Shown: positions 38,704 through 41,476, counted from the stretch's first letter. The stretch is 64,000 nucleotides of DNA from Piromyces finnis finn (GCA_002104945.1 MCFH01000034.1:434001-498000), one strand, 5' to 3'. Notes: generated from the letters alone by a model not told the origin. Program-made: numbers and translations.

Positions 38704-40045
38704 ATGGAAAGTACAGATAAAAAATCTGAAACAGTACAAAAAAGTCCACAAGATTTCAAGGCAAAAGCATTAGCCTTTAAAAAAGCTTTCGTTAAATACT
38801 GTTATGAAAATAGAATTTTAGACGGTTCATTTACAGAACAAAATGTTGCTCTTATTTCCTATGCTTTAGGTATTGTTGGAGGTATTAGTTTTATTTTCAC
38901 ATTTAATAAAAAATATGGAAACTTTTTCGCTTTTGTTTTTTGGTTAGCTTTATACCATAATATGGAATTTGTTTCAACTGCTACTTTTAAAAGAGAAGTC
39001 TGTTCAATTGATTGTATGTAAAGTTAAAAATATATATATATATATATATTATTGTATTATTATTATTATTATGTAAAAAGCGTATATTCACCATTATTAT
39101 CATTATTACTTTTTTTATTTATAATATATATTTTTAGCCTATTTACTTAATCATAGTGATGCTTATCATTTAGCTATGGCTACTGGTATGATTGAATACT
39201 GGATAGAAAGACTTGTTTTTAAGAATGCTTCTTGGAAGGGTTTCAATATTTTTTCATTTATTGGTAAATATATACATATAAATATATATATTTATATATA
39301 TTCGTATTATCTTTTATTATTTAGAAAAAAAAATAGTTAATGGAAGGAAATGAGTATGAATTAATTTAATATTTTAATTTATTCATATTATATTATAGGA
39401 TTATTATTAGTCATTGCTGGTCAATATACAAGAACTGCTGGTATGTTTACTTGTAAATCTAATTTTTCACATGTTATTGAAGAAGAAAAACGTCCACAAC
39501 ATGTTTTAGTAAAGAATGGAATTTACAAGTAAGTAATAGTATATCTCCTCTTTTTTATTATATTCATACGATTTGGACTATACCTATTATAAGAAAGAAA
39601 GAAAAAAAAAATTATAAAACGACAACAAAATCAACAACAATAACAATAACAATATTAAAACATTATAAAAATATAAAATATAATAATAGATATTTAAGAC
39701 ATCCAGCATACACTGGTTTCTTCTACTGGGGTATTGGTACTCAATTATTATTAATGAACCCAATTTCAGTCATAGGTTACGCCGTTGTTCTTCACAAATT
39801 CTTCAAAGACAGAATAGCATATCCTTTTTTAGATAGATTTAAATATATAGAGTTTATGATGAATAATTATATAATTTTTTATTTTAAAAATTTTTATATA
39901 ACCTTAACTATATATATATATATTTATTTTTTTTTTTTTTGTTATGGAAAATACTTATGAGGAAAATACTCTTGTTGATTTCTTTGGTGACGAATATATC
40001 GAATATAGAAAAACAGCCAAGGTTTATATACCAGGAATTAATTAA
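38704..40045 (+). CDS. STE14: Protein-S-isoprenylcysteine O-methyltransferase (ICMT), 5 exons
   Basis: YHNMEF, SYLLNHS, SNFSHVIEEEKRPQHVLVKNGIYKYLRHPAYTGFFYWGIGTQLLLMNP, and RIAYEENTLVDFFGDEYIEY...VYIPGI. The last junction requires an AT-AC intron. Confidence 0.93.
39819..39954 (+). other. U12-type (minor spliceosome) AT-AC intron, 136 nt
   Basis: 5' end ATATCCTTTT, branch-site CCTTAAC at 39902-39908, 3' end AC at 39953-39954. Removal gives AGA ATA GC|T TAT GAG GAA, the conserved ICMT RIxxEExxL motif. Confidence 0.9.
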
Positions 40046-40686: not shown

Positions 40687-41476
40687 TTATTTTTGAGCTC
40701 CATTGGCATATGGATTTAAAGGATTTGGAATATTATAATTTGTAGGTTGAACTACGGGTCTATCAGTTTTAAATAAGAATTGTAATGAATATTGTTTTGA
40801 ATCAGTATCCCAATGTGTCCAGAATTTACCTTCTAATTTATCAATTTCTTTACTTTGAACTTTAAATGCAATAGTTTCGTATGGTTCTGCTGCGAATAAT
40901 AAATATTGATGTTGTTTATTTGGTGCTTCAATATGTTGTTCATATGCTGACATAAAACGATAACGTGGTATTACATTTTCTGCAATTTCAGGATATTGAA
41001 TTTGGAAAAGAAGACCTAATTGTTTTGTAATTTGATCTCTTACTTTGGTTACTTTGTAACCTGGTCTACCAATTTTAACTGCAATCTTTTTAATTTGAAC
41101 TTTATTAGCAAGACTATTTTGAAGAGGTAAATTTTGATTTTGACTATTTTCTTGAGCATCTCTTGCTGCACGTCTAGCTAAATTAGTTTGATGCTTTTTA
41201 CCTTGAGTGTGAGCTAAATAACTACCTTCATTATTGTGAAGAGTTAAACAAAGTTTACATTCATAAGAACCTAAATGATTTTTCATAAACTATTATCATT
41301 ATTTTAATTTATTTATTTATTGTTATTGGTATTTTTTTTTAAGAGATGGTTTAATAAATGAATTGTAAATTGATTTCGAAATTTCATATTTATGTTTTTT
41401 ATCATATAAATATATATTCATGTATATTTAATAATTATATATAAATTATATTTAGATATTGATATTTGATATTTAA

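Follow-up and report, generated by a model that had tools for sequence, protein, structure and literature searches.

The ICMT locus of Piromyces finnis

The window analyzed here, a stretch of 64,000 nucleotides from the Piromyces finnis genome (GCA_002104945.1 MCFH01000034.1:434001-498000) numbered from its first letter, carries on its plus strand at 38704-40045 a five-exon gene for ICMT. Introns 1-3 are ordinary GT-AG introns, and the fourth begins with AT and ends with AC:

38704..39013, +: ICMT exon 1; ATG at 38704, phase 1 end; its open reading frame gives residues 1-103 of P0004
39014..39137, +: ICMT intron 1, GT-AG (GTATGT...TTTTAG); the split codon T+CC is Ser, matching P0004
39138..39263, +: ICMT exon 2; translation agrees with P0004
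39264..39398, +: ICMT intron 2, GT-AG (GTAAAT...TATAG)
39399..39528, +: ICMT exon 3; Pfam PF04140 at 28.8 bits, profile positions 3-41
39529..39689, +: ICMT intron 3, GT-AG (GTAAGT...AATAG)
39690..39818, +: ICMT exon 4; PF04140 at 46.3 bits, profile positions 43-86; ends ...AGA ATA GC, phase 2
39819..39954, +: ICMT intron 4, 136 nt, assigned as U12-type AT-AC from its motifs, a gapless homologue join and RNA-proven orthologous junctions
39955..40045, +: ICMT exon 5; T + YEENTLVDFFGDEYIEYRKTAKVYIPGIN + TAA

Searched singly, exons 3 and 4 both exceed the PF04140 cut-off of 24 bits, and the C-terminal segment RHPxY...RI-x-x-EE-x-x-L-x-x-F-F/Y-G-x-x-Y is present in the encoded protein. The gene product is collinear with solved ICMTs (5v7p residues 207-247 and 250-275; 4a2n residues 167-189), and the first Glu of exon 5 aligns to 5v7p residue 250 and to the EE..L..FGDEYIEY segment of 4a2n. 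The deposited protein P0004 ("ICMT-domain-containing protein [Piromyces finnis]"), retrieved with the full-length open reading frame of a relative's transcript (L052), corresponds in sequence to the ICMT exons of the window, apart from one junction residue considered below.

As the only other PF04140 match in the genome is a DUF1295 protein, the window's ICMT is the single Ste14-type gene found, and the residues that its C-terminus contributes to the SAM site therefore need the intron at 39819-39954 to be removed; retention would replace the conserved EE..L..FFG..Y..Y segment with other sequence. The proposal of the first-pass annotation that CAAX methylation depends on this intron is thus a fair inference. 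The DUF1295 protein (L062:787-1671, minus strand, on contig C167 of the assembly) is intronless and 294 aa long; it matches DUF1295 at 133 bits, with further hits to the ICMT and PEMT profiles, and is not a second Ste14-type enzyme.

Tail-to-tail with ICMT, on the minus strand at 40687-41286, lies what appears to be a gene for an SF3A2-like zinc-finger protein. At the matching downstream position of the orthologous loci introduced below (Anaeromyces robustus L053 and contig L067), the opposite-strand gene has Pfam SF3A2 matches.

Signals and junction of the fourth intron

The signals assigned within intron 4 are as follows:

39819..39828, +: minor-type 5' splice site ATATCCTTTT; identical 10-mer in the orthologues L053 and L067
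39902..39908, +: branch-site motif CCTTAAC, with predicted branch A at 39907; sole such motif in the intron
39909..39952, +: spacer of (TA)n and T14, free of AC/AG
39910-39923, +: (AT)7 run
39927-39940, +: T14 run
39953..39954, +: terminal AC, the first AC/AG after the branch motif

These positions bear out the coordinates first proposed for the donor, the CCTTAAC motif, and the terminal AC, with AT standing at 39819-20 and AC at 39953-54. The predicted branch adenosine, the second A of CCTTAAC, lies 47 nt from the last intron base (the initial estimate had been about 46 nt), which places the motif at -53 to -47 relative to the 3' end. Between the end of the motif and the last base the intron is 61% T, and the long T-run noted at the outset is T14; given the AT-rich genome, this run may be a product of slippage rather than a signal. 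A search for spacer RNA structure that would shorten the path from branch to 3' site returned nothing significant (MFE -2.7 kcal/mol, z = +0.46).

Taken singly, the motifs occur in the window at chance frequency, with four instances of RTATCCTTT (3.6 expected) and three of CCTTAAC (4.3 expected), and ATATCCTTT occurs at three further places in the window, none of them preceded by an exon. What rises above chance is the ordered pair, which falls at the very position where homology calls for a junction. The last Ile of exon 4 aligns to residue 247 of Tribolium ICMT (PDB 5v7p) and the first Glu of exon 5 to residue 250, which leaves room for exactly two residues. Excision of 39819-39954 joins GC (39817-18) to T (39955) as an Ala codon followed by Tyr, which supplies both residues and a join without gaps against 5v7p; the nucleotide junction reads ...AGAATAGC/TTATGAGG... 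and the protein ...FFKDRI-A-YEENTLVDFFG.... All 12 homologues aligned likewise show RI-x-x-EE without a gap, with R, I, E, E, and L invariant (alignment A1), and the product RIAYEENTL expected from the start fits this pattern.

We find no GT in a usable donor position at the gap between exons 4 and 5, in keeping with the earlier statement that no GT-AG alternative preserves frame and motif. The sole other in-frame option found is a GC-AG intron at 39817-39961, which would be removed by the major spliceosome with the T-run as its polypyrimidine tract (T14 lies about 21 nt upstream of the AG) and would yield RI/ENTL at the protein level and ...AGAATA/GAAAATACT at the nucleotide level. We give this reading virtually no credence, because it deletes three residues, A-Y-E, including the invariant Glu at a position where the 12 of 12 homologues and the Tribolium structure sequence are gapless; in addition, ATA/GCATAT is a poor GC donor and the RNA of the orthologues uses AT-AC.

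A second competitor is the public gene model itself. The deposited P0004 reads RI-T-YEE, whereas the AT-AC join gives Ala at that residue. Thr can arise only from ACT (39953-55) placed after ATA (39814-16), so the annotated intron must be 39817-39952 (GC...AT), with the junction ...AGAATA/ACTTATGAG...; it is 136 nt long, the same length as the AT-AC intron, and shifted by 2 nt, and it keeps the same frame. The junction residue varies among homologues, and homology therefore cannot decide between Ala and Thr. However, GC-AT is not a known splice pair, the model leaves a perfect ATATCCTTTT 2 nt inside the intron, and both RNA-verified orthologues cut before ATATCC and after AC, all of which makes the deposited junction very improbable. 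P0004 is alone in its cluster, which lacks a Logan source, and a search with the C-terminal 77 aa for a transcript-derived P. finnis ICMT gave only relatives. The consensus and the two RNA-verified orthologues favor Ala over Thr as the residue predicted here; on the AT-AC model, one residue of the public P. finnis protein is to be corrected.

RNA evidence from orthologous introns

For P. finnis itself, each of four sequencing runs contains 0.43-0.46 of the words sampled across the gene span, a level compatible with spliced RNA but too coarse to place the junction. Two metatranscriptome contigs, L051 and L052, represent spliced ICMT mRNAs of related fungi and are collinear at the nucleotide level with the AT-AC join.

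Two relatives place the junction exactly. At the A. robustus locus (L053, from GCA_002104895.1), the protein is matched exactly by seven Logan RNA contigs, of which three were aligned and gave identical exon blocks, and one was tested base by base. The RNA permits one unique junction, which removes a 167-nt intron at L053:2933-3099 (ATATCCTTTT...AAATAC). Codon and phase are those of the P. finnis intron; a single branch-like motif, CTTTAAC, has its A 32 nt from the 3' end, and the terminal AC is the first AC/AG to follow it. Likewise, a metagenomic Piromyces-like contig (L067) and a transcript (L073), whose exon segments are 95-100% identical where aligned, define a unique junction that removes a 180-nt intron at L067:1482-1661 (ATATCCTTTT...TCTTAC) with CTTTAAC 69 nt from its 3' end. 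Both of these RNA-verified introns are cut directly before ATATCC and directly after AC, in the same codon as in P. finnis, and exon 5 of L073 and exon 5 of the window (39955 onward) begin with the same 16 bases. Because of these orthologue junctions and the shared start of exon 5, use of the AT-AC junction in P. finnis RNA is very likely.

In the L067 intron (L067:1593-1661), an in-frame AAC lies 27 nt past the branch motif and would add 14 codons, and the transcript uses the AC at 69 nt; "first AC" is thus not an absolute rule. The skipped AAC could reflect alternative use of 3' sites, or a context rule under which A at -3 is disfavored.

Intron position was also compared in more distant ICMT genes. 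The Funneliformis ICMT has no intron at the intron 4 site and two more distant homologues are intronless, so that the idea of an ancient intron was rejected and conservation at this codon, seen in A. robustus and L067, is shown only within the Neocallimastigomycota.

Branch-to-3'-site distances across the genome

The long spacing is not peculiar to ICMT. In the 56,455,805-bp genome (232 contigs), ATATCCTTT followed by CCTTAAC within 15-300 nt occurs 74 times, vs. 20 for a reversed-pattern control, and 27 of these 74 pairs belong to one 288-nt repeat family, leaving 47 outside it. For the 46 loci besides the window's, we examined which AC or AG past the motif extends the upstream frame by 25 codons or more. 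Counting the window's own, this frame and open-reading-frame test, in which 3' sites were chosen by coding logic rather than from RNA, gave 27 confident AT-AC introns. The distance from branch A to 3' end is 11-14 nt in 11 of them and 18 nt in one; in the other 15 it spans 24-82 nt (24, 28, 28, 29, 32, 35, 35, 35, 38, 43, 47, 62, 64, 78, and 82 nt).

In 13 of the 15 long-spacer introns, the in-frame AC or AG is also the first one past the motif. For the two exceptions (L030 and L046), the only earlier dinucleotide is an AG at 5-7 nt past the branch A, which is too short a distance for a 3' site. Between +10 from the branch A and the 3' site, one of 516 positions holds AC/AG; the 5' portions of these introns have 76 in 1897. 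This depletion (binomial P = 1.5e-8) is partly circular in that the first in-frame site was the one picked, frame and length of the open reading frame being independent of that choice. Continuity of Pfam profiles supports three of the long junctions individually: L013 (64 nt), which splits methyltransferase motif I as VLL-D/LCCGTG, L020 (62 nt, TM231), and L044 (35 nt, UQ_con).

With the same strict motifs, the pattern led by the GT-type donor GTATCCTTT was found eight times in the genome vs. six in the control, and yielded no usable set. As GT donors stand at about control level, the minor introns detected with strict motifs are almost all AT-AC; among animal minor introns, GT-AG predominates.

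The dispersed repeat of about 288 nt (e.g., contig C2:567624-567911, plus 26 copies) carries ATATCCTTT...CCTTAAC and inflates the motif counts; with its coding-like composition it looks like part of a mobile element. Separately, the AT-AC candidate L014 (contig C46:492269-492919) has a 79-codon upstream open reading frame and a stretch past CCTTAAC that starts with ATT- and ATTTT-type repeats and is without AC or AG in the 250 nt scanned (300 nt fetched).

These distances bear on whether CCTTAAC is the branch site of the ICMT intron at all. The intron could be U12-type AT-AC and keep canonical spacing if a cryptic adenosine within TTTGTTATGGAAAATAC, 10-20 nt before the 3' end, served as the branch: a spacing of 11-13 nt is required in canonical U12 introns (PMC3584512), and the last ~13 nt (TTATGGnAAATAC) are common to the A. 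robustus orthologue. Yet the last 40 nt of the intron hold nothing resembling a U12 binding site, and the orthologues in P. finnis, A. robustus, and L067 all keep C(C/T)TTAAC as the sole branch-like motif, 32-69 nt from the end. Moreover, a perfect CCTTAAC is expected by chance in roughly 0.2-0.4% of introns of ~100 nt, and 15 introns have it at 24-82 nt. A cryptic branch is on this evidence improbable. The long-spacer architecture is real and lineage-wide, with distances of 32, 47, and 69 nt at the ICMT intron of three taxa. The modified 3'-site mechanism proposed in the first-pass annotation is, beyond that architecture, a hypothesis.

Minor spliceosome machinery

Each of the four minor spliceosomal snRNAs sought by profile has one full-length match in the genome:

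U12 snRNA: one full-length match, 66.6 bits (Rfam threshold 53)
U6atac snRNA: one full-length match, 52.1 bits (Rfam threshold 33)
U4atac snRNA: one full-length match, 49.2 bits (Rfam threshold 53, just below)
U11 snRNA: one full-length match, 38.2 bits (Rfam threshold 39, just below)

The presence of minor snRNAs, proposed as a check on the intron, therefore stands outright for U12 and U6atac, while U11 and U4atac fall just short of their thresholds. The genome's U12 retains the branch-binding GUAAGGA (GAGUAAGGAUAA), to which the CCTTAAC of the ICMT intron is complementary, and the U11 candidate has an Sm site and a GCGGAAUCGAUAUCAAGAGAUUUCG stem-loop, which we take to be a conserved U11 feature. 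About 550 nt from the U11 candidate lies a SNORD14-like C/D box snoRNA (L002:2162-2325, minus strand; 52 bits, threshold 64).

On the protein side, one CHHC finger of the U11-48K family was found, which may belong to U11-48K, TRM13, or GTSF1, and a Pfam search for PDCD7 (U11/U12-59K) gave no match anywhere and is uninformative.

U6atac departs from its consensus. In animals, the AAGGA box of U6atac pairs with UCCUU of the 5' splice site. The only P. finnis gene (L004:1501-1649, i.e., contig C112:211500-211648, plus strand) reads GUAUGAGCCGAGAGA where the Rfam consensus has GUAUGAAAGGAGAGA, so that the box is largely unable to pair with the 5' splice site, even though ATATCCTTT persists in the introns; a search of the genome allowing up to two mismatches gave no second copy.

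A model for splicing of the ICMT intron

Considering its motifs, the junction that homology requires, and the two RNA-proven orthologue junctions, we are confident, short of certainty, that 39819-39954 is, as the first-pass annotation had it, a genuine U12-dependent AT-AC intron with a distal branch; it lies in phase 2 in the codon between RI and YEE. Under this model, recognition of /ATATCCTTTT by U11 and U6atac would set the 5' end of the intron, and U12 snRNA would pair with CCTTAAC at 39902-39908 and bulge A39907 as the branch. The 3' end would then be the first downstream AC, 47 nt off across a (TA)n/T14 spacer without AC/AG, the second step presumably taking the next acceptable AC with no tight distance limit in the gut-fungal lineage. 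The usual spacing of 11-13 nt would thus be relaxed in this lineage, with A/T-rich low-complexity expansions tolerated unless they add a competing AC or AG. As to the origin of the spacers, the (TA)n, Tn, and ATTTT-type repeats have the look of replication slippage.

A broader reading is that the minor spliceosome of the Neocallimastigomycota has been remodelled: its introns would be almost all AT-AC, its distance rule lost, a U-rich and AC/AG-free spacer crossed before the 3' site, and U6atac complementarity mostly lost. Within this reading, over half of the confident introns would have a branch distance of 24-82 nt, and some possibly one of hundreds of nt. We offer the combination tentatively, as a possibility that falls a little short of probable. 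If it holds, choice of the 3' site by the minor spliceosome is not intrinsically distance-limited, and gut fungi would offer a natural setting in which to study what imposes such a limit in other organisms.

There are also wider consequences. Short spacing between branch and 3' site is generally taken as a hallmark of minor introns, and classifiers incorporate it as a limited search window. With more than half of the clear AT-AC introns breaking the spacing rule, minor introns in this lineage are probably under-counted, and gene models at long-spacer minor introns are error-prone; the distance limit seen in animals, in turn, may stem from accessory factors rather than from the U12 catalytic core.

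Comparison with known systems

Minor introns and minor snRNAs have been reported for P. finnis and Neocallimastix californiae (Larue and Roy, 2023; PMC10639083), with 129 minor introns counted in the latter (Olthof et al., 2024; PMC11347168). Minor splicing in P. finnis was thus already known: the view that this fungus keeps a minor spliceosome, to which the four snRNA matches speak as well, is right and not new, and the ICMT intron adds one more gene to a class already published for the species. In the parts of these two surveys available to us, which cover the same species and clade, counts are given and branch-site spacing is not described. In the limited collection of literature searched, we found nothing beyond both surveys on U12-type or minor splicing in Neocallimastigomycota or anaerobic fungi, and no description of a distant-branch AT-AC architecture. 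The parallel first drawn with an atypical architecture in Glomeromycota found no support, as Rhizophagus motifs are said to "closely follow" those of animals and plants (Larue and Roy, 2023; PMC10639083), and the Funneliformis ICMT lacks an intron at this site.

With the canonical U12 AT-AC introns of animals and plants, the ICMT intron shares a /ATATCCTT 5' site, a TCCTTAAC-type branch motif complementary to U12, AT-AC termini, a non-zero phase, and, by analogy, a probable dependence on U11, U12, U4atac, and U6atac. It differs from them in two typical properties. In U12 introns the branch optimally lies 11-13 nt from the 3' site and a distinct polypyrimidine tract is lacking (Turunen et al., 2013; PMC3584512), whereas the ICMT intron has 47 nt (32 and 69 nt in the orthologues) and a T14 run. 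A short branch distance is typical of the class rather than part of its strict definition, and classifiers accept up to ~45 nt.

Physarum polycephalum, the most familiar of the remodelled systems, offers another case of lineage-specific remodelling of minor-intron signals. There, the branch motif has changed to TTTGA with compensating changes in U12, and a distance of 9-12 nt is strictly kept (Larue, Elias, and Roy; bioRxiv 10.1101/2020.10.12.336362); P. finnis has a canonical motif and U12 box, and it is the distance that is relaxed. In the same Physarum study, intronIC scores the branch region from -45 to -5 (bioRxiv 10.1101/2020.10.12.336362). A window so placed would miss the ICMT branch motif, whose seven bases all lie upstream of it.

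The U2-type introns provide the remaining point of reference, as they include introns with distant branch points and an AG-exclusion zone, and budding yeast chooses the first AG. The P. finnis introns resemble these distant-branch introns in having a spacer depleted of the 3' dinucleotide and a pyrimidine-rich stretch within it. The U2-type introns, however, are GT-AG, whereas the signals in P. finnis are minor-type and the excluded dinucleotides are AC and AG.
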